A DNA stretch of 64,000 nucleotides from Klebsormidium nitens (taxonomy: Eukaryota; Plantae; Klebsormidiophyceae): contig DF237419.1 in assembly GCA_000708835.1 (NCBI GenBank), forward strand, positions 8,782-72,781. Reading direction: 5' to 3'. The notes under the pieces are model-generated. The model worked only from the letters and a program-made list of their open reading frames with translations, searched no databases and was not told the origin of the DNA. Positions 2,530 to 14,023 of this stretch are shown in pieces; the first letter of the stretch is position 1; each line of letters starts with the position of its first letter. The translations under genes and the position numbers were made by a program.

Positions 2530-4172
2530 ATGGCTCGAGATGAAGTGCAGCGCTTCATTGGAGCAAGGGACTTGACTGTGCTCGAAGGTCGTCCTCTGGT
2601 GTTTGAGAAGAACTCTGCTTTCAAAAGCTACCTGTGCTGCAATGGGCAGATAGCAAATCTGGCTACTTGGTGCATCCCAGCTTGCTTCTGTCCGGTTGGC
2701 ACATTCTGTCCAGGCCGGTTGTATGAGCACTTCAGCTTACAGGTACAGCTGCTTCTTGAGCTGATGGTTGTCATCTGTATGTGTGCATTGATTGTTCATG
2801 TGGAGCCCCCACGGAAAATGAATACCGCTTTAGCAATTGTTTCGTGATGGTTGTGAGATCAAGCTGAATTTGCAGTGCACGGACAACTGCTTTAGCTTCA
2901 CAACGTGCTCCTATAAAATCTGGAGCAGGCAACGTGCACAGAGTACGCAAGACCAGGTTGTTGTGAATGTACAAAGAAAAGCTGAAATGAAAGCAGAGAA
3001 AAGAAGTTTGATTTTGCACTTCTTACGAAGTTTTTGAGCTCTATTGGATCGTAAATCAGGGTATTCGTGCTTTGACTTGCCATCTTCACTGGCACTCAGT
3101 CGGCGCGAATTTTGATTTATAACTCGAGCTCCCGGTCCGTATAGAAAAGCTGACAGCTCGTGGGTCGCTTCCATGCAGCTAGGTGCAGACTCCTTGAAGT
3201 ACTCCACAGCTACCAATGACTGCTGCTGTCACATTGCCTACGAGCAGAAGACTGTGCCCTTGGACAAAATCCAGGATGTGGAGCTGCAAACAGATTGCCT
3301 GCTCAGCTGTTTCGACTTGAAAAAGGTATGCATAATCTCTGCTTTACTGAAGTGTCCACCTCAGTAGCTTCGATATACGAGACGGGATGGCATCAGGCAT
3401 GTATATCTGGAACTGGCTGCCTGTCCAATTGCACATCCAATGAGCTTGTCAAAAGCTTCTGTGTTTGAAGCGACTTGATCAAAGTTCATAAGATTGCTCA
3501 CGTATACAGACGGTCATGAAAGGATGGAAAGGTGCTGCGGTGTGGGCTGCATCTGAAAGTGAGAACATCCTTGCAACATCAGTACCTTGTAGTTGTTCAT
3601 TGAAAGAGAAGCACGCCATCTAAGCTCTCTATCTGGTTCTCTGGCATTCCAAAGCAGAGGTCAATGGACTGAGGCAGCAAGAGACCAGGCTACAAAGAGG
3701 TCAGGCTCTCTTCAGCAAGCAAGGTTCCGTGTGACTGCCCCACAGGCTCGCCTCTGACGTTTACATCTCGATGCAGATCGCCGTCCAGACAGCAGGGCAG
3801 GGCGGCCCCGGCGCCGAGGTCCAGGCGGCTTTCCTGACTGCCCCAGAGGAGGTCCGTGACGCCATCCAGCTGGCAGTCAAGTGCCACCGCGAGGCACCCA
3901 CTACCGCCCCCCAGCAGCAAGCCGGCATGCTCCGGGGGCCAGCCGCCGCCAAAAATATGCTGCAGCGGCTGCAGGGTTTGGATCAGCTGGTGAAGCGGGG
4001 AGTGCTGACGCATGAGGAAGCCGGACGGCTTCGGACGCCGGTGCTGGTGGCGGATTCGGACCCCACGCAGCGGCTAGTGGAGGTGGCGGAGCTGGCTGAT
4101 ACGCAGGTCATTTCGCGGGAGGAGTTCGGGGAAGTCAAAGCCGCGCTGCTGGCGCAGATCATGAGGGCTTAG
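2530..4172 (+). CDS. Spliced gene: Cys-rich N-terminus, bacterial-type PH (bPH_2/DUF304-like) domain and two C-terminal SHOCT-like helices
   Basis: Exons ~2530-2742, 2876-(end uncertain), 3210-3325 and 3777-4172, with GT-AG boundaries. CCCHIAYEQKTVPLDKIQDVELQ is typical of bPH_2. LQGLDQLVKRGVLTHEEAGRLR and LVEVAELADTQVISREEFGEVKAALL fit the SHOCT consensus (L..L..L...G.IseEEF...K..LL). Confidence 0.7.
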
Positions 4173-6877
4173 GCCGTGTAGACGAGGGAAGAAAGATTTG
4201 ATGTTCTTGGTTTGGAAACGATGGATAGGTTGTGGTTTTCTTGAGTCCGAGTGATGAAGCTGTCAAGCTCACGGACCTTGAAGGATGCTCCACTAGATTG
4301 AGTTTGGGCCAGATATTAATCTTGGCCAGGATCTTAGCACATCAAAATCGAGATACGGTGGTCCGAAGTGAGAAAACCATGCAGCCTCGTAGCTTATCAT
4401 GTAGGATATATTAACGAGACAAATGTGCCAAACAGAATTTGAACGGCGTCCTCTATAGCTCTTCTATTTGAGATTTATGTGCGATGCGATGCGACTCGTG
4501 TCATTGATCGAAGGCCCGGTCCTGCCGCGCGCTGTGTTCAGCCAACCTAGATTCTGAACCGCTTGTCGTCACGGCGCAACTCAAAAGCACAGATAATGCA
4601 TGCAACGCTGACACACTGCAGATTGCATCGCTTCCTGGAGTCCGTTAATTTGCGGAGCTGCAATGCCTACAGGCAGATTTGATACACTACCAACTTTAGT
4701 ATGGCCGGGCCTCGCCCGATCATCAAGCTCGATCCGCATTGGGCAACGGGCTAACAACTTTTGATTACAATGATCCGTTACCATGGTTTTCTAGCCCGCC
4801 GAGGTGAACGGGTTCTACAGGGCTTTCAAGCGCGCGCTGACCACACTAGGAAAACAATAAGTGAACTTTGGCATGATGACGGATTCCCATTACTGGAAAC
4901 GAGCCCCGCGGGGTGCCTTCTGGCAGGGAAAACTGTATCTTTCACTGCCAAAGAAAGAGGATACAAAAGCAGGCGCAGGAGTTCGACAACGACGTGATTA
5001 GATAGTCGTACAATATGAATGGACAGATCCTTTTTGGCACCACTGCTTGAGCAGTTGACGTCCGTCTTCTGCCGGCATTCTCCCGTCCCAGCTGTTGTAG
5101 TGCTGCCATTCATACGAAAAGAAGGACTATAAGCGACGTCACAGATACGAGCGCAAGATTAGTACTTGCGACCACGAGAAGGAAGTACACATGCAACACG
5201 TTGTACACAAGGACGAAGTCAATCTATGTCCCTGGGACCGACCTTGAGGGACCAAGAAAGAAAGTTCTTCCAGTCAGTCTTAGTTGGACGACTGCCCCTG
5301 GTTCAGATGTCATCCTGCTTCAGCACTAACCATATGAGGTCCTGATCATGCGCCGATTTGCCTGGAGCAAAGAATGAAAGCAATGCAAAGTAAGCATTCT
5401 CAGCTTGAACCAAATTAAGCGTTCTCAAATTGAGCCCAAGAAATATAAGCTCGTTAGCAAATGTGCTTGGTATGGCCCTCACAGGGCCCAAAGAAACGAG
5501 GGCGAACTTCACTTACGTCATGATGATGCAACGCAGGAGCTGCGGCATGATGTATTACTGTATTATAATGCAATAATGCACCGTCAATTCACCATGAGGC
5601 AATTTGACATGCATGGCGTCGAACACACGGCCTCTTGGTCTTGTTTGATGCAAGCAATACGTTGTTTCGACGTTCTCGCACCTCCCACGACATCCGCTGC
5701 TTCCCCAAACGGACGTTTGATTTCCGACATTGACTCGAGTCACATGAAGGGCCTAGTACAATCATGATACGGCGTTCTGTAAGGTATACCTATACAAAGC
5801 AGCGGCTAATTAACTGCACGGCGGCCATGCAGCGCAGCGCACGCGAGCTTGGCATGCAGTTGCAGTCCTCGCGCTAATAGGATTATCGGTATTTGGCCAT
5901 AGCGTGTGTCCCGGCGATCACGGGCGCCATGATGCTAGCTAAAGCTAGTGGATAGGGACATACGAAATGCAACCCGGATGTCTATGTCAGCATGGGCGGT
6001 CAAAACTGCATGAGACCAGGCCGATTCCTAATTAGTCGGTCTGAGCTGTTGAGAGGAGATTCGCGCGCATGGTGGTTGCAACGTGCAAAGCGGAACCGTG
6101 ACTTCGTGCAGCTGTACTATACTCAATTATGATGGCGTTACGTCTCAACAAATGAGCTCATGCAAAGTCAAGAAACCAAGACGCCATGAACAATGTTCCT
6201 TCCTCACAGGCTTCGAATGCAGTTGCAAAGCCATCATGCTTCGATCGAGCCTGCATATTTTCGTAAGCAGCAACCGACATACTTTCCTGGCGCAACATAC
6301 CCTTGACCAATTTCGATGAGATAGGAGGGTAATTGCACCCATTCATGCAATTTGCGCTGAACATGACAACAGTTGTCCGCCAGAATTAGGACCCCAACAG
6401 TAGGACCTTTGCGTTTACAGTCCGTGCTTATGAAAGGAATAAGGCACCAGGCAGTTCGGATTCCGACATTGTGTATACAGGCTATGGCACAGTCCAAGCA
6501 AGCCGACGCAGACAACGTCTGACAAACACCTGGGACTGCTGCCAAAACATAGTCAAGACTCTCAAAGGAGCTGCGCTTGAGACAAAGTTCCCGTACCAGC
6601 AGTTCCCATAAATATGCTTGCTCTACTTAGTCGGGTGACAAAGGGAGACCTGCCTGTCCTACGAGTTTATCTATGCCAAAACGGAAGAGGCCAGGATCTC
6701 GAAAGGATCCTACAAATTCTGTACGACCCCTTCAGAATTTTTTATTCCAACTACTGTTCCAGCCAATTGCCACAGGAGAGTATGACATCTACCTAGAGAG
6801 ACCTATGCAATGTCCGTCTGTACTAAACAAGGCTTGATTTTGGCGTTCGCCTGGCAGTAGTCATTTGCAGGAGAACC

Positions 6878-9800
6878 TTATTGCTTCTCGACCTTCGAGA
6901 CTGGTGAAATCGTTCCAAAAGAAAGTCGAAATGTGCCGCTCGTGTTGATAGAATAGTTGCCCCCGTAAGGAGGCCTGCAAGCAACAAACTGAAAACGTTA
7001 GGGATGGAAGGTCGGGCCAACAACAAAAGGCTCGCTAAAAACAAATGTGTATCATCGAAAATGCAAAGATCGGCAGTTCTTGAAAGCAATAGCACAAGAA
7101 CCAACCATTATCAGACCATAAGTGCAACGGGTTGAGATCCACGTGATGCTGCACGCAAGAACAACTCAGGACTTGGCAAGCATGGTGCACCCCTGTCGTT
7201 ATCAATCTGCAACTTCAACTCCATGCTTCTTTAACTTGTGTACTTATAAACAAGCCGGATGGTGAAGCAGGCCTCAAAAGGGTGTCAAAAACGACCAGAG
7301 ATGCAGCTTACGTGTCCCAGTCGCCAGCCCCGTTAGTGACCACGAATTGGAGTGACGAGGCCGGTACGCGAATGACCTGTAAAAGAGATGGCACTAAGAG
7401 CACTAAACATACAGAAACCAATTTCTGCCGCTCTTGAACGTCAAGGACCGGCTGAATATTACTTGGTGCAAGCAGAAGGTAAAACCATGCACGTTTCTCT
7501 AGCTCGCAGATCCGTCCTACGAGGCCCGGCTTTCATTTGAAAGGACCTTCTTCGACGGTACCCTCTTTAGCCATCGAAAAATCTGTTGAGATCGCCCGGC
7601 TCGAAGCACCAAGCCCATCATGACCAGAGTTCGCGAACTAAAGGAATGAATGTACGAGCTCGGCTTTGCGGAGACGGAGCTCGCCGTGGTTTCCTCCGCT
7701 CATCTTTTCAGTCATTGCGGATGCAAATGTTCTGTCCTTTGAAGTCATGCAACCACTCAACAAGGAAAATTCCTTTCGGATTGATCCGATGACCAACATC
7801 GATGGCACAACGGAGCAGGAGTCCCCCACCTTGCTGTCCTGTTCGGCGTCAAAGCCAAACTGCACCCCGGGCAGTTCCGTCCAACTCCCGCCATCGGCCG
7901 CGAAGTGCAGGAAGGCCTTGTCCCAGCCGCTGTCGTACAGGAGCGTGATGACCCCGGCCTCAGGCGCCGTTTCCTCCGTGCCCGGAGCGAGGGCCTGGTT
8001 GATCGCGCGCTCCGCTTCCTGTATGGAGAGAGACGATGTGGATCCACAGAGCTGCTTTTATATGACTTCCGGGGGCCATCGGTGAAAGATCAAGGAAGTA
8101 AAAGAACACGTCGGCCCTTGAGACAAGGTCTAGGCCCTACTTAAGGACAGAGACAAGAAGAGCAAGACGCTTGAGCTGAAATACTTGACACCTGAAAGTC
8201 GCACCTCGTTCCTCGAACAACATCACACTGCGCATTGCCAACCGACTATCCCATCATGGACAAACGCGAGAACTCGCAACATCTCACATCGTTGTCGTAT
8301 CGTGCATCAGTGAAAGGCAAACGAGAAAAGGAGATACAAACCATGCGCACAAACTGCGCGGATGCGAACACAAACGATGATTCAAAGGTACATCGGAATC
8401 AAATACCCACCGTAACTTTGGTCTGGTCCTCTTCGGCAGTGCCCTCCTCTTCCTGTTCTTCACCCCTCTCTTCTCCCTCGGTCGCTTCCATCTCTGTTCC
8501 TTCCGGTACTTCCTCATCCGTTTCTTCTGGCGCCCTCTCAGTCTCCGTCTCGTCTGCCCCCTCCGTCTCTTCATTGACTGTCTCTGCGGCACCAGTGACC
8601 GGCTCCGCCGCCTCCCTAACCGACTCCTGTGCAGCCTCTGCGGGGCCGCTAACCGCCTCACTAACCACGTCCTTGGCCCCACTAACCACATCCCCAGCTT
8701 CCTTCGCTTTCTCCTCAACCTCCTCTTTGACTGTGTCTGCAGAGTCTTTGACTGCCTCGCTGGCCGCCTCTGCAGTCCCACTAACCACCTCACTAACCGG
8801 CTTGCTAACCTCCTCGGTTTCCTCATCTGCTATTCGTCCAAACACAGACGTGTCAGAGCTCGAGGCGTCCTCTTCAGCCGAGTCGTCCTCCCCTTCAGCG
8901 GTGTCAAACTTCTCGGCTGCAGAGGCAGCCAACTCCTGTGCGCCTGACTTAACACCATGTGCCGCCGACTTGACTCCCTCTACGGCCTCGCTGGTAGCCT
9001 CCTTCACTCCTTCCAAACCCTCTCCGGCCGCTTCTTTGACGGACTCGAGAACAGCCTCGGGACTCTCTGCACCAGGCTGCTCAACCTTAACTTCCTCCTT
9101 AACCTCGTCCTCGACCTCGTGCTTCACCCCCTCCTCGCTAACCTCATCCTCGACAGCCTTCTCAGCCTTGACTTCGTCCTTAACCTCACCCTTAACCTCC
9201 TCCCTACCCTCCTCTTCAGCATTCTCCTCCGACAGCGCTTCCTCTGCCGCCTCGTTCATTTCCTCGAGCCCTTCGGCAACAGCGCTCACTTCTTCAATCT
9301 TCTCAGGAACTTCCTCAGCCCTTGCCTCCAGATCCTCGCTCTCCGCATCCTCTGCCTCAGGCCCTTCAGCGGCAGCACTAGGCACCTCTGCACAGTCCTC
9401 GATGTTTGCATCTGGAATAGCCGCTTCAGCCGCCTCTAGTTCCTTCTTGACTTCCGCGCTTACAGTTGGCTCCTCTGGGATGCTCTCAGCTTTCACCTCC
9501 GAGACTGGCTCCGTCAAAGTGCTCTCCGCCGCAACTGGCTCCTCTCGGATGCTCTCCTCATTCTCATCTGGAATTGGCTCCTCAGCAGCGCTCTCAGTCT
9601 TCTCTTCTGCCACTGGAGCAGCCTCGTCTTCCCCCTCGGAAACCTGTGCTTCTGCCTGCTCCTCACTTTCTCGGCTGCTCTTCGTTGCATCTTCGGCAGC
9701 ATCCTGGACTTCTGACTTCGTGCTCCCTGCCTCTGCAACCACTCCAACAATCTCTTCTTCCTCATTTACAAAGTCAGGGACATTTGCATCCGGAATCACC

Positions 9801-12800
9801 TCCTCCGTCGCCTCTGGAAGCAACTCCGCGTCTGCTTCTGAGCTGGCTGCAGCTTTGTCCGCTGCTTCAGAAGGAATCTGGACAGGACTTGCCGCTGCGG
9901 CCTCAGCCTCGGCAGTCGCCTCGGTCTTGGGGACGAGGGTAGTGCTCAGTCCCTGAAGAAGACGAAGAACAATATGAGCACAGAGACGTTTGCAAAAAGA
10001 AAGAATTAAGCATGCTTTAAAAAAGCTGAGCATGATACTAAACAATCAACCATACCTCACTGCTGCTTACAACACAGTTCATGCCATGCGATTGGAAACC
10101 TCAGCATCATAGCCTGCGCCTGCATGCAAACTCACTAAAATCTCAATCTTCCATTCCGAGGGCCCTTCCAGCCCTGTTTCAGAAGGCCCAACGGTGGACG
10201 GGTGAAACCCTCACCGACCACTCCCTCAAAAGCTCTTGCGGTGCCACCTTTGTATCCAGGAAGTTCTGGACTTGCTTGATGGTCTCTTTCCGATCCTTGG
10301 CAAACAGCAGCTTCTTCACAAATACTTGAACCGCGGCTGCAGACCCCAGCAGCTGTAGCGCTGTCTCTGCCTGCAGAGTGAAAGGTTGTTGGCTTCCTTG
10401 CTTTGACGAAAAAGTCCATGTCTGCAGAGCAATGGTCTGTTGATCCTTGGCTGGCTGCAAGGTATGTCCCAAAATTATAAGGCATGTTCATTTTCAAGAA
10501 GTCAGCAGCGACAGTTCGAATCGGACAGACTTCCCACATGCATATTCCAGAAAAAGGTTTCATATGAAGGCCACCCTTGCGTCCAGATAATGTCGGTGCA
10601 GCTCTGAAAACTCAGCATCCAAATCCAATTGTAACCCCAGGGCGGCATTTTAACAAAGGGAGAGCGTTAGCGCAAGGTAATCTTACTGGGGGCAAAACGA
10701 AAGCATGATGATACTGGATAGAATTAATTCCCGAGTGTGATGAGAACATCTTGCACTCAAGACTTGACGTATTGCAAGTGCAGGAGAACTGACCTCTGTG
10801 AAGAGGATGAGCGATACACCAGCAGCGGCTGCGACTCCAAGTGTGGCTGGCAACACCTGCTTGTTGTCCTGCAATTCCTGCAGATCAGAGGCGAGGTCCT
10901 TGAAGGAAGGCTCCGTAACATCACCAACCCCCCAGCCTCTGACCTTTAAGCCCCTCGCTGGAACAGCAACCTTCAAACCTTTGCATATACTTTGTGTGGA
11001 GATGCAGGTAGAAATCCAACCAGATCCTACAGACGATCTAAACACGGACTAGAGCATGGGGGAGGTGCTTGAAGCGGACTTCCATAGGGTGACTGGTAAA
11101 TAAGCGGCCTAATTCTTCACAATCCTTTACAACAATCTGGTAAAGCAAGACAGCTATGATGAATGGAGCCTAAAGACAAACTATCTAGGTAGCTGTACCA
11201 AGCAGACTGTACAAAGAGAACATCAGCAAGGCCGATGGAACCACAGTAACTTGTCAACGTTTGTTCTTGAAAAGGAGAACAAACCAGAGGACAGGGTTGT
11301 ATTGTCTTCAGAAGGAGTGGATGTTGCCAGACAATCCTACAACAGCGTTTACAATGCCCTGTAGGGGCGACATTGTACACAGCGAATCGCACAATGTGTG
11401 CAGCAAGCAGCGTCTTCAGTCGGCTTCCTTCAATCACCTTGAGAGGCCTCCTAAACTGCGCGCTAATTTCACCACGACCATACCTTATGCACCGGGCATC
11501 TGCTATGGTTACTACTTGACACATGTTGCGTCGCTACGACTACAGCCTCAGTGGCATCCTCCCTCTACTCTATGGTGTGTTCCTATCTGTGTCTAGTGAG
11601 CTTGGGACCACCCTTGTCAGCAGACGGCTTCTCAAGAATCAGTCTGCAAGCAATTGGACTTGTGTAAGTAGTCGGAGCTTTTCTGAAGTAACTTAAATGA
11701 CTTCGGCATTCTATTTTGCGACCAGTGGTTGGGGATTTTCCAACCCCTGACCACTCTGGTGGGGCTCGAGGGCTTGCAAACATTGAAAGACAGCAACAGG
11801 AAGTTGTTTGAACGCGACTCTCTTAAGAAGCGGACGCTTCAGAATAAGGGACAAGGAACCAGCTTTACTCCAGAAAGAGGGGGTGAAAATGCAGAATACG
11901 CACCTGAATCGTGCTTGTGACAGCGTCCTTGATCTCGCCCAGATCTAGAGTGAACGTCTGTGGGGTTCTCCAAGGAAGCTGGCTCTCCTGAAGGCAGCAA
12001 TGTTAAAAGTCTATGAATAAAAGTGCGGGGCAAACTTTCGACGAGCACGCGAAAACTCTGCAAATAACAAGGCACCTGCAGACTTCTTCCAATTCAAGGG
12101 TCGACCTGGCACAAGAAGCAACTGCATTTACGGCTCAAATGGTCAGCATTGTGCAATTTCAACCTTTATTTCTCTGTCCTGTAACAGACCGCACCACGCA
12201 GGAGGTGCCTGGCTTCAGAAGATGTTGCGAAGGTGCTGACTGGTGACACAGAGATAAATCAGTGGTTTGGTTGAAGAGCATTGCTGGAACCACCAAAGAG
12301 AAGGCAAAAAAACGGCTATCTCAAATGGAGTAGCCGGAAGACGGCTATCTCAACTTGAGTAGCCCGAGGACGTGCCAAGGGTTTTGGAACAAAATGTCCC
12401 GAGCTCCTCTTAAAACTCACCCTCCACCCTTGCGGCCCTTGCGCTCCTCCGTTCACGACAAACACGCGGCTGTAGCCTTCCTTAGAGAGGATCTTTGCTG
12501 CCTGGGCGGCTGACGAGCCCGCGCTGCAGGAACAATTGTAACATTAGCAAGAGAAAACTTTGGAGATATGCAAAAAAGCTATTGCACCAAGTTCGGCGTA
12601 TTGACCTTTTCTTAAAACCTCAAAAGGTCAAGGACTCAACCACAATCAGCTGATCGAGAAATCTATGCGAATAGCTTCAAGCCTGCAAAGAAAACAGACT
12701 ATGCATCATCTGAAAAACAAGAGGGCGCTTTGAGGAGAAAGAATGCCGCTAAGGATGCGTAATGCCATGGTTTGATTGCCTGCTGCCATGAAGCCAAAGA

Positions 12801-14023
12801 ACTAAATTACACCATTACCAAGAGCAGATAAAGGCACCGTAAAAGGTCTTGTGGGCTTCTTGAGTAGCATGTTTTCACGTTTGAAGCACTTCACTGTAGC
12901 AGTTCACTACCCTGAACCCGTAAGCTCACTCAACATTAGGATTTCAGCGGAACCAGAGCAAATGTGCTTTACAAACCCTGTCAATGCTGCAGTTCAGTGG
13001 CTGCATTCCAAAATAGATATCGGCAGATACCAAAAGCCGCCAACAGCAAACCAGCACCCACATTCCGATTTACCTGTCCAGAAGCACAATAAGGGCGCCC
13101 TGGTCCAACGCCCTGCCCTTTACCGCTGTCCGCAGCTCTTCCTCAGCCCCCAGTCCCGCATCAGACTCCATAGCAACCGACAACACCTTCCGACCAAGCT
13201 TCGGGCTCCCCTCCTTAGCATTCTCATCCTTGCTCCTGATATCTACGAGGACCGCTCCGTCCTCTTTATTCAACCTCGCAAAGGCCTCGCTGGCACTCAA
13301 GTTCCCAGCATACCCCTTATTCATGCTCAAAAACAGAAGGATAGGGATGGAAACTGCCGCAACCCCTACGGCGACATACAGTGGGTTTGCGCTGAGGGCA
13401 TTCCCAATGTCCCCCGCTTGGGCCTTCCACTCGTCTAAAGACTTGTACCCGTCGATGAGCTCCTGGTCCCAGTAGTCCAGGGCCCACTTCACATCGGGGT
13501 TGTCCGCCCGCAGTTTGCTTAACCACGTCCCCGACTGGATGTCTGCCAGCTGCGCGCCCCAGTCGTCCAGAGACTTGTAACCGTCCTCCAACTCCTTATC
13601 CCAGTAATCGAACGCCCACTTGATGGTGGGGTTGCCCTGTCTCAGGTTTGCAAGCTGTGCCTTCCATTCATCAAGGGACTTGTACCCGTCCTCCAGCTCC
13701 ATATCCCAGTAATCGAGGGCCCACTTCACATCTTTGTTGTTTTCCCTCAAGTCTCCGAGGAATGTACCCAAGGGCAGCGTGGGGATCGCCTGTAAACTCT
13801 CAAAACCCTTAAAACCTGCGGCGGAGCACCTCACGCCAGCCCGCCTCCTGGTCGACTTCCACGAACCCAACCCTTCAGAGGCGCCCAAGCCTACGACCGA
13901 ATCGTGAGGAACTATCCTCTGCGCAGAACATGGCAGTTGCTGGGCTTCTGTAATTCTCCCCCTTGAAAAGGAGGAAGGTACAGCTAGCCCAGAGACCAGC
14001 CGCTGAGCACTGGCGGCCGCCAT
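6878..14023 (-). CDS. STR4: TROL/STR4-like thylakoid rhodanese protein with three N-terminal Trp-rich repeats, a long acidic linker and a C-terminal CBM25 starch-binding domain (~1089 aa)
   Basis: Exons (minus strand): 14023-13074, 12523-12421, 11987-11904, 10877-10794, 10370-10215, 9952-8411, 8018-7830, 7376-7312, 6974-6878. All have GT-AG ends and compatible phases. TROL-like segments: ANPLYVAVGVAAVSIP (TM1), VLVDIRS...GSP, NGGAQGPQGWRESQLPW, LGVAAAAGVSLILFTEAETALQLLGSAAAVQVFVKKLLFAKDRKETIKQVQNFLDTKVAPQELL. The C-terminus ITLLYDSGWDKAFLHF...GSWTELPGV...LQFVVTNGAGDWDTPPYGGNY matches the CBM25 pattern. Confidence 0.85.
12312..12369. repeat. Two tandem 29-bp units, each a small hairpin (GGCTA.CTC...GAGTAGCC), inside a TROL intron
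   Basis: acggctatctcaaatggagtagccggaag followed by acggctatctcaacttgagtagcccgagg. Confidence 0.8.
13418..13759 (-). repeat. Three coding repeats of ~35 aa, consensus L..LR..NP.VKWALDYWD.EL.DGYKSLDEW.AQ
   Basis: Visible in the translation of ORF 13070-14056 (aa ~100-213) and at DNA level, e.g. ccagtaatcgagggcccacttcacatc vs ccagtagtccagggcccacttcacatc. Confidence 0.95.

Follow-up and report, generated by a model that had tools for sequence, protein, structure and literature searches.

The window, a 64,000-nucleotide stretch of Klebsormidium nitens DNA, carries on the minus strand (14023-6878) a gene of nine exons and 1089 codons, the structure of which is confirmed by spliced transcript contigs (4 runs, 4 studies). 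It is a nuclear gene expressed in a green alga, and its best TROL match is a streptophyte. The exons are as follows, together with the alternative terminal exon of a short isoform.

13074..14023, minus strand: exon 1; its product starts with a transit-peptide-like stretch and continues through three Trp-rich repeats of ~35 aa and TM1 LYVAVGVAAVSIPILLFLSM into the N-terminal part of the rhodanese domain
12421..12523, minus strand: exon 2, encoding the rhodanese active-site loop with Asp for the catalytic Cys (LLD/SAGSS...) and the C-terminal part of the domain; supported by joints 11986/12420 and loose ends at 12526
11904..11987, minus strand: exon 3, encoding ESQLPWRTPQTFTLDLGEIKDAVTSTIQ; branch point of the long and short isoforms
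11184..11643, minus strand: alternative terminal exon, encoding TDS and a stop, the remainder being 3'UTR; lower bound approximate
10794..10877, minus strand: exon 4, encoding TM2 LPATLGVAAAAGVSLILFTE; supported by joints, hydropathy and tblastn to TROLs
10215..10370, minus strand: exon 5, with the signature helix of the TROL family, AETALQLLGSAAAVQVFVKKLLFAKDRKETIKQVQNFLDTKVAPQELL; boundaries set by joints
8411..9952, minus strand: exon 6, encoding a 514-aa acidic low-complexity linker; joints 8017/8410 and 9951/10214 in 4/4 runs
7830..8018, minus strand: exon A, 63 codons; a short linker leading into the N-terminal half of a CBM25-type module (VITLLYDSGWDKAFLHFAADGGSWTELPGVQF...)
7312..7376, minus strand: exon B, which ends in phase 2; central strands of the module (VIRVPASSLQFVVTNGAGDWD); joints 7374/7828 and 6973/7311
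6878..6974, minus strand: exon C; last part of the module and C-terminal residues of the protein, (T)PPYGGNYSINTSGTFRLSFGTISPVSKVEKQ, up to the TAA stop; joint 6973/7311

Every intron of the long form, eight in all, is seen as a GT..AG joint in the contigs of these 4 runs, as is the alternative joint. Exon 3 exits by two joints, 10876/11903 leading to exon 4 and 11643/11904 (CT..AC ends, 3 runs) leading to the alternative exon. Single contigs spanned exon 3 (31 nt), 4, 5, 6, A and B, and the acidic exon (1542 nt, 8411-9952) was tied by joints to exon A on one side and to exons 5, 4 and 3 on the other. For the link between exons 1 and 2, the loose ends at exon 2 matched the end of exon 1, whose translation ends ...LIVLLD. 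Since the loose ends and the joints chain the exons to each other, the CBM25 exons and the TROL-like part lie on one transcript. The 3'UTR runs on below 6700, with contigs covering 6700-6973. Rfam gave no match over the locus, the conserved alternative 3'UTR included.

Colinear tblastn matches to the TROL of Mesotaenium endlicherianum (P0002), whose homologs carry the names TROL/STR4, indicate that the gene is a member of the TROL/STR4 family, in agreement with its initial annotation; its product would be a membrane protein of the chloroplast. Exon 1 matched P0002 with an E value of 4.8e-16 and shared 80% identity with P0001, and exon 5 matched the helix that follows TM2 in P0002 (67% identity over 51 aa, E 4.7e-15). 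TM1 and TM2 were located by hydropathy in exons 1 and 4, respectively, the transit peptide at the N-terminus was judged by eye, and the spliced ortholog P0018 scored 27.6 bits with Pfam Rhodanese (threshold 22.2). In the alignment, the Asp at the site of the catalytic Cys was invariant in P0018, Mesotaenium, Brassica, Marchantia and P0010. TROL carries an Asp residue at the Cys site, and its rhodanese domain lies in the lumen and its tail in the stroma (PMC7108012).

The window protein shares with the family of Arabidopsis At4g01050 the order of transit peptide, TM1, Asp-for-Cys inactive rhodanese, TM2 and conserved helix (LLFAxDRKxT...FLDTKVAP), and in both the stromal tail is a low-complexity spacer ending in a docking element, which is predicted in the present case. 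The tail of plant TROL is composed of a Pro-rich PEPE region and the FNR-binding motif, whereas that of the window protein is composed of the 514-aa acidic linker and the CBM25. The window protein is also longer (1089 aa, compared with about 430-590 aa for TROL), and has extra N-terminal Trp repeats and an extra short isoform truncated after the rhodanese domain. By eye only, the Trp repeats contain ...DEWKAQL..., which is like the Chlamydomonas W[R/K]xx[L] motif.

The FNR-binding motif (ITEP/MRM, ...LSPY..YPDLKPP.SP...) was absent from the gene in a six-frame motif scan, as had been reported at first. Since this motif is missing, the window protein is homologous to TROL but is not functionally a TROL. 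Nearly all full-length TROL homologs retrieved had the motif, or a variant close to it, at the C-terminus, including that of Mesotaenium in the Zygnematophyceae (...LSPSAEYSDLKPPTSPTPPSS), and three algal TROL-type genomic loci (L003, L004 and L009) end in the mini-exon Y[PL]ELKPP[AT]SP... followed by a stop. Because the zygnematophyte TROL and these further algal genes have the motif, FNR docking is not a land-plant invention, and the land-plant origin that had been suggested for it has to be corrected. A candidate for an alternative ITP exon, SPYGSPLQAPPPCSS (11048-11092, minus strand), was rejected, being intronic, of near-zero read depth and not conserved.

The closest relatives of the window gene, L001 and L002, are genomic loci from one metagenome sample, which also contains L004 and L009, that is, two variants of each gene type. 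The other possibility named in the initial annotation, that a paralog docks FNR, fits better in view of this co-occurrence, which holds at the level of one metagenome sample. In the exon-1-level tree, the branch leading to the window clade is long (1.35), by which a derived copy is suggested; the CBM-type and the algal FNR-motif type were not resolved as sister paralogs in this tree. On these comparisons the gene looks like a divergent, lineage-restricted and fast-evolving TROL paralog that is not the FNR anchor of its lineage. The statement that the CBM25 "replaces" the FNR-binding tail holds as to position, the CBM25 standing where plant TROL has the motif; the direction that the word implies is an inference, which the tree does not resolve.

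Exon A alone matched Pfam CBM_25 with an E value of 4.6e-5 (24.1 bits, gathering threshold 27.3) over profile positions 6-39 of 106, and two orthologous exon A sequences matched the same family with a best E of 3e-6. The top three PDB matches of exon A were all CBM25 structures (2c3v, 2laa and 2lab). The single sequence gave them E values of 1.7e-5 to 1.2e-4, the profile of exon A orthologs values of 1.3e-8 to 2.3e-6, and no other PDB entry fell below E 0.3 in these searches. Exons B and C, which are too short, gave only chance matches to Pfam and PDB, alone or as ortholog profiles, and the significant score is confined to the N-terminal half of the module (exon A). By this similarity, which is beyond chance, the tail is a CBM25-type module; the initial annotation had read the last three exons in the same way, the peptides quoted there lie on the minus strand at 8018-6878, and the Pfam and PDB matches support this reading.

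The best solved relatives of exon A are BhCBM25 of Bacillus halodurans amylase G-6 (2C3V) and the CBM25s of Paenibacillus polymyxa beta/alpha-amylase (2LAA and 2LAB), with which it has YxxGW...HF...G.WT.LPGV in common. The window module, as predicted from the sequence, differs from them in being eukaryotic, in having two introns inside, in being present as a single copy and in sitting on a membrane protein, whereas theirs are parts of secreted amylases. In the alignment, the H and W of exon A fall on H26 and W34 of the 2c3v chain, and by eye the GDWD of exon B corresponds to W74 (GQWD). Also by eye, the NGxGxWD of exon B lines up with 2c3v 67-75 (FNNGSGQWD), and the longer pattern NGxGxWD...GxNY, running from exon B into exon C, resembles 2c3v 67-84, W74 included. 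The His/Trp/Trp set is invariant in the window gene, L001 and L002, and N76 and N77 of 2c3v are T and P, respectively, in the window gene. His26, Trp34 and Trp74 are the residues with which BhCBM25 reportedly contacts glucan (Boraston et al. 2006). Since these alpha-glucan-contact His and Trp residues are kept, the predicted module would most likely bind starch or malto-oligosaccharide.

All three module exons were recovered in L001 and L002, with identities of 69-70% for exon A, 86% for exon B (splice sites the same) and 68% for exon C (stop position the same). The differences at the three codon positions of exons A-C were 19:16:60 against L001 and 15:17:61 against L002, from which it is judged that purifying selection is acting on all three exons; the third-position bias of the substitutions points to a maintained, specific function. 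The exon order is shared with L001, L002 and L010, and the positions of the two spliceosomal introns of the module are kept in relatives. The architecture was traced only via these three genomic loci, which are close relatives with about 80% identity in exon 1.

New here is a conserved short isoform without the whole tail, in which the stop follows the rhodanese domain. It ends three codons past exon 3 and is without TM2, the acidic linker and the CBM25. The alternative terminal exon has 72-75% nucleotide identity in relatives, and a spliced contig of a relative (L008/P0018) ends in ...NTIQS and a stop. Contigs of the short isoform were 2-6 times deeper than those of the long isoform, contig depth being a poor measure; the tail-less isoform is apparently more abundant, and the tailed form may be a minor product. 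An alternative terminal exon with an ITP motif had been considered in the initial annotation: an alternative terminal exon does exist, seems dominant and had been missed, and what it encodes is TDS and a stop, with no ITP motif. In this isoform pair, alternative splicing determines the presence or absence of a predicted docking tail on a membrane protein.

The linker encoded by exon 6 consists of 27% Glu and 17% Ala, with a net charge of about -130 and only 3 aromatic residues. It had no match in Pfam, and its nucleotide conservation in relatives is only patchy.

Our main reading, to which we assign a probability of about 0.55, is that the gene encodes a TROL paralog with a predicted starch-binding tail that holds or positions starch at thylakoids, and not an FNR anchor. 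The long isoform probably links thylakoid membranes to starch and not to FNR. By homology with the TROL topology, the linker and the CBM25 would face the stroma, where starch lies, and the starch held or positioned by the long isoform could be stromal granules or a pyrenoid starch sheath. A single BhCBM25 binds granular starch weakly, with a Kd of about 30 uM (PMC3398936), and avidity would therefore be needed; many membrane-anchored copies may offset the weak binding of a single CBM in this way, which would suit a tether. The acidic linker would act as a long flexible spacer, and alternative splicing would set the share of the protein bearing the tail. We know of no precedent for a net charge of -130 beside a starch binder, and this weighs against the tether reading. 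As read here, the gene offers a concrete candidate for thylakoid-starch attachment in an alga that is not one of the chlorophyte models.

The CBM25-like fold might also no longer bind insoluble starch and might sense soluble malto-oligosaccharides or dock a protein, with the main function residing in the shared Trp repeats and rhodanese domain. This would agree with the seemingly greater abundance of the tail-less isoform and its conservation in a relative, with the TPP that follows the conserved WD in place of the NNQ of BhCBM25, and with the single CBM copy in a family that usually occurs in tandem. We consider it unlikely in view of the invariant His/Trp/Trp platform in three orthologs, the third-codon-position substitutions, which indicate a maintained function, and the nearest solved relatives, which are all starch binders.

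Starch tethering by the long isoform could also be part of an active role, in which the protein is a factor of starch-granule initiation or positioning that nucleates or localises granules at thylakoids. The anatomy would be the same as that of a passive tether (membrane anchor, long spacer and a single weak CBM), from which the data do not separate it, and the inclusion of the tail by alternative splicing would suit a regulatory role; however, the protein has no coiled coil, CBM48 or similarity to PTST/MFP1, and we regard such a role as quite improbable. Arabidopsis has the thylakoid-associated MFP1 and the CBM48 protein PTST2, and an initiation factor of this kind would put both into one polypeptide.

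That the gene is the sole TROL of its lineage, an ancestral scaffold with a non-FNR partner, and that FNR docking arose in land plants would agree with the missing motif and with reviews that call TROL/Tic62 tethering plant-specific, but it is very unlikely given the motif in the Mesotaenium TROL and in L003, L004 and L009, the co-occurrence of the last two with the relatives, and the long branch of the window clade (1.35), which suggests a derived copy. Hardly credible is a gene-model artefact, in which the CBM25 exons would be a separate downstream gene or a bacterial contaminant: among the spliced contigs of the 4 studies none ran from exon 1 through exon C and CBM25 is a mostly bacterial family, but contigs join exon 3 (31 nt) to exons 4, 5, 6, A and B, further joints, from four studies, link A to B to C and 1 to 2 to 3, and the two spliceosomal introns inside the module have conserved positions, with the same exon order in L001, L002 and L010.

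The predicted starch-binding tail of the main reading has counterparts in SAGA1 and SAGA2 of Chlamydomonas and PMST of Chlorella. In each of these, as predicted for the window protein, a CBM that binds starch is joined to a long region of disorder, and each is proposed or shown to connect starch with another pyrenoid sub-compartment. They differ from it in having an N-terminal CBM20, no membrane anchor and RBMs for Rubisco, and have no sequence relationship to it. Work on TROL treats it as the anchor by which plants dock FNR on thylakoids, and inactive-rhodanese membrane proteins were recently found to shape the pyrenoid membranes of Chlamydomonas (RBMP2). Chlamydomonas RBMP2 and Chlorella PMTT lie in the thylakoid membrane, as is predicted for the window protein, and have a rhodanese domain that is non-catalytic (Asp) and a disordered region in the stroma with docking elements; these elements are Rubisco-binding motifs, whereas that of the window protein is a CBM, and the comparison is an analogy. 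The two proteins show a scaffold of this kind with a cargo other than FNR, and RBMP2 in particular sets a precedent for exchanging the stromal tail of a TM-rhodanese(Asp)-TM scaffold. A transcribed, spliced and selected TROL relative with a predicted starch-binding tail suggests a general docking platform with exchangeable cargo.

As a speculative extension, which we think doubtful, the protein might be a one-polypeptide organiser of streptophyte-type pyrenoid or thylakoid starch, in which a TROL/RBMP2-type anchor carries Trp repeats that bind Rubisco or the matrix and a CBM25 that binds the starch sheath via a 500-aa acidic leash, with splicing switching the tail. If this were true, the TROL scaffold would be an ancient and general thylakoid docking platform whose stromal cargo was swapped repeatedly, being FNR in plants, Rubisco in Chlamydomonas and starch here.

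Further relatives were sought with the individual exons. The HMMER representative search with exon 1 returned no annotated full-length ortholog (about 1100 aa). The protein-homologue search with exon A gave no candidates between 35 and 110 aa in length, and in that with the acidic exon nothing scored, low-complexity words having flooded the candidates; both searches are silent on longer relatives. Exon A and its alignment were each run against metagenomes, and no relative was confirmed in a collection that apparently does not include the sample of L001 and L002. In a feature search of the ESM Atlas, the matches of exon A were all to CBM families that bind starch (CBM20, 48, 53, 26 and 25), at low recognition, which is a weak lead.

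The C-terminal tail of the nine-exon TROL/STR4-family gene is encoded by its last three exons. The peptides that the initial annotation quoted for 6878-8018 were found on the minus strand, spread over these exons, with AG/GT at all of their boundaries.

Terminal exons of the long isoform (window positions)
Exon A, 7830-8018, minus strand: 63 codons, EAERAINQ...GVITLLYDSGWDKAFLHFAADGGSWTELPGVQFGFDAEQDSK
Exon B, 7312-7376, minus strand: VIRVPASSLQFVVTNGAGDWD and two bases
Exon C, 6878-6974, minus strand: (T)PPYGGNYSINTSGTFRLSFGTISPVSKVEKQ, then stop

Searched alone against Pfam, exon A gave CBM_25 as its sole match (E 4.6e-5, profile positions 6-39 of 106), its 24.1 bits being just below the whole-domain threshold of 27.3 bits, and exon A orthologs from two metagenomic relatives also matched CBM_25 (best E 3e-6). 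Against all PDB sequences, the top three were the three solved CBM25 modules 2c3v, 2laa and 2lab, with E values of 1.7e-5 to 1.2e-4 when the single sequence was searched and of 1.3e-8 to 2.3e-6 with a three-sequence profile. In the 2c3v chain, H26 and W34 aligned with H and W of exon A, and residues 67-84 of 2c3v (FNNGSGQWDNNQGRDYDF), W74 included, resembled by eye the exon B/C junction VTNGAGDWDTPPYGGNYSI; H26, W34 and W74 reportedly make up the glucan-binding platform (Boraston et al. 2006). Exons B and C searched singly gave no scoring match, both being too short to score. The observation of a CBM25-type tail was thus confirmed, its CBM25 membership being supported by half of the domain (Pfam and PDB matches of exon A) together with motif-level agreement in the other half (exons B and C).

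The preceding exons were compared with TROL proteins. HMMER with exon 1 against 1.84 billion representatives returned a close relative (P0001, 80% identity), then TROL-type proteins. The Mesotaenium endlicherianum protein ME000133S00540 (P0002), whose homologs carry the name TROL or rhodanese-like domain-containing protein 4 (Brassica, grasses, Marchantia, Ceratopteris and others), was colinear with window exons 1, 2, 4 and 5, and the 51 residues after TM2 were 67% identical between the two (E 4.7e-15). The natural spliced ortholog P0018 passed Pfam Rhodanese, and its alignment with TROLs showed an invariant Asp at the catalytic Cys position, as is known for TROL (PMC7108012). The 514 residues of exon 6 are 27% Glu and 17% Ala, carry a net charge of about -130 and include three aromatic residues; the exon had no match in Pfam, its nucleotide conservation in relatives was patchy, and its simplest reading is a disordered spacer where TROL has the PEPE region. 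Exon 1 also contains three Trp-rich repeats of about 35 aa (13418-13759, minus strand; unit DVKWALDYWDxELxDGYKSLDEWKAQL...) between the putative transit peptide and TM1; their copy number varies, since P0001 has four and P0015 fewer. By eye alone, their ...DEWKAQL is like W[R/K]xxL, the motif that binds Rubisco in Chlamydomonas. Separately, five rhodanese proteins of the moss Ceratodon purpureus (P0008, P0023-P0026) have the TROL helix (...KEIQTFLDTKIAPQEF...) and annotated isoforms ending without the FNR motif, which may reflect a further tail variant in the TROL family or faulty annotation.

In TROL the rhodanese domain is in the lumen and the tail in the stroma (PMC7108012). Since TM2 and the helix are common to TROL and the window protein, the acidic linker and CBM25 of the latter probably face the stroma, the site of starch. 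A lone BhCBM25 has one site and weak affinity for granular starch (Kd about 30 uM), which a tandem arrangement normally raises (PMC3398936). Many membrane-held copies of CBM25 would provide avidity equal to that of tandem modules, and a flexible 500-residue spacer would give a long reach. We consider it unlikely that the CBM25-like module has a non-starch ligand, and somewhat less likely still that granule initiation is the role of the protein. For the proposed membrane-held starch-binding protein, the nearest functional parallels are chlorophyte pyrenoid proteins. RBMP2, likened by its architecture, combines a TM, an Asp-rhodanese domain and more TMs with a tail that bears Rubisco-binding motifs, and PMTT is similar to it; CBM20 is the module of the starch tethers SAGA1/2 and PMST. 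Among known kinds, the window gene is a variant of the TROL family and of plastid tethers based on a CBM.

Scanning of all frames revealed no FNR-binding motif in the window gene, in agreement with the initial annotation. The C-termini of nearly all full-length TROLs retrieved, including those of Mesotaenium (...LSPSAEYSDLKPPTSPTPPSS) and Marchantia, read ...LSPY..YPDLKPP.SP.PS.P or a near variant. Three algal TROL-type loci match the window in TROL exons 3-5 (44-73% identity) and lack CBM exons; their last exon is a mini-exon with the FNR motif, LQ|Y[PL]ELKPP[AT]SP...stop, and an extra intron interrupts what in the window gene is the undivided exon 5.

Algal FNR-motif TROL-type genes
L004:9517-14200
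L009:4793-9640
L003:250-3700

Judged from these sequences, the FNR motif is older than land plants. The earlier interpretation is partly supported: it holds for the CBM25 tail and the missing motif, but not for FNR docking as a possible land-plant innovation, because the Mesotaenium TROL and the three algal loci carry the motif; the same genes make it very unlikely that the window gene is the lineage's sole TROL. L004 and L009 came from JGI sample 3300060284, as did the CBM-type relatives L001 and L002 (two variants per gene type), and both types were found in neighbouring SRA accessions; this joint occurrence fits one organism with both genes and is not proof of it. In an exon-1-level tree the window gene and P0001 grouped on a long branch (1.35), and the tree did not resolve how this pair is placed with respect to land plants, Mesotaenium and the algal FNR-motif clade. 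Our preferred reading of the CBM-bearing gene is a derived paralog confined to its lineage.

Protein searches did not reach proteins of about 1100 aa, and the CBM-bearing architecture was followed in close relatives; two metagenome scans for relatives were blank. Exons of L001 and L002 were about 75-88% identical to the window gene in nucleotides, and exons A-B-C kept their order downstream of TROL-like exons, with identical splice and stop positions. Differences in exons A-C at codon positions 1:2:3 were 19:16:60 (L001) and 15:17:61 (L002), a pattern of purifying selection. Because the two spliceosomal introns within the CBM25 module are conserved, neither contamination nor a recent transfer can account for it.

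Logan contigs from four runs of four studies were compared with window 6700-12690. The runs, their type guessed as RNA, are taken as RNA since the contigs lack introns and have canonical splice ends. Intron joints were at 6974/7312, 7376/7830, 8018/8411, 9952/10215, 10370/10794, 10877/11904 and 11987/12421, all CT..AC, i.e. GT..AG on the minus strand, and loose contig ends at exon 2 matched the end of exon 1. The long-isoform coding sequence is 3270 nt (1089 codons; exon 1/2 boundaries 13074 and 12421-12523). The span from exon 1 to exon C was in no single contig among the four runs, because the assembly graph forks past exon 3. Single contigs of about 2.0-2.1 kb joined exons 3 (31 nt)-4-5-6-A and ran into B, which, with the two introns inside the module, leaves an artefactual origin of the CBM25 exons scarcely credible. 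A 573-aa Ser/Ala/Thr-rich plus-strand ORF (8235-9956) opposite the acidic exon, the mirror of the GAG/GCN-rich coding strand, was rejected as a gene, every transcript joint being minus-strand. Downstream of the gene, another plus-strand ORF (133 aa, 3771-4172) falls within GC-rich sequence.

In three runs, exon 3 was joined alternatively to 11643.

Terminal exon of the short isoform
Alternative terminal exon, 11184-11643 (lower bound approximate), minus strand: spliced from exon 3; T-D-S and stop in frame, remainder 3'UTR

The short isoform retains the N-terminal repeats, TM1 and rhodanese domain and is without TM2, linker and CBM25. The k-mer depth of its contigs was 140-360 versus 23-97 for the long form, i.e. 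2-6 times, contig depth being a poor measure, so that its greater abundance is a tendency only. Where the initial annotation had considered a dominant terminal exon bearing the ITP motif, an alternative exon does exist and seems dominant, but the motif is absent from it; an Rfam search of this exon gave no match. In another run, the spliced contig L008 of a relative, which encodes P0018, joined exons 1-2-3 to a homologous terminal exon ending ...NTIQS*. The mostly non-coding alternative exon was 72-75% identical to relatives (L001 12666-12967, L008 1260-1477), on par with coding exons and unlike ordinary introns, which did not align between the window gene and relatives. By this splicing and sequence identity, the short isoform is conserved.
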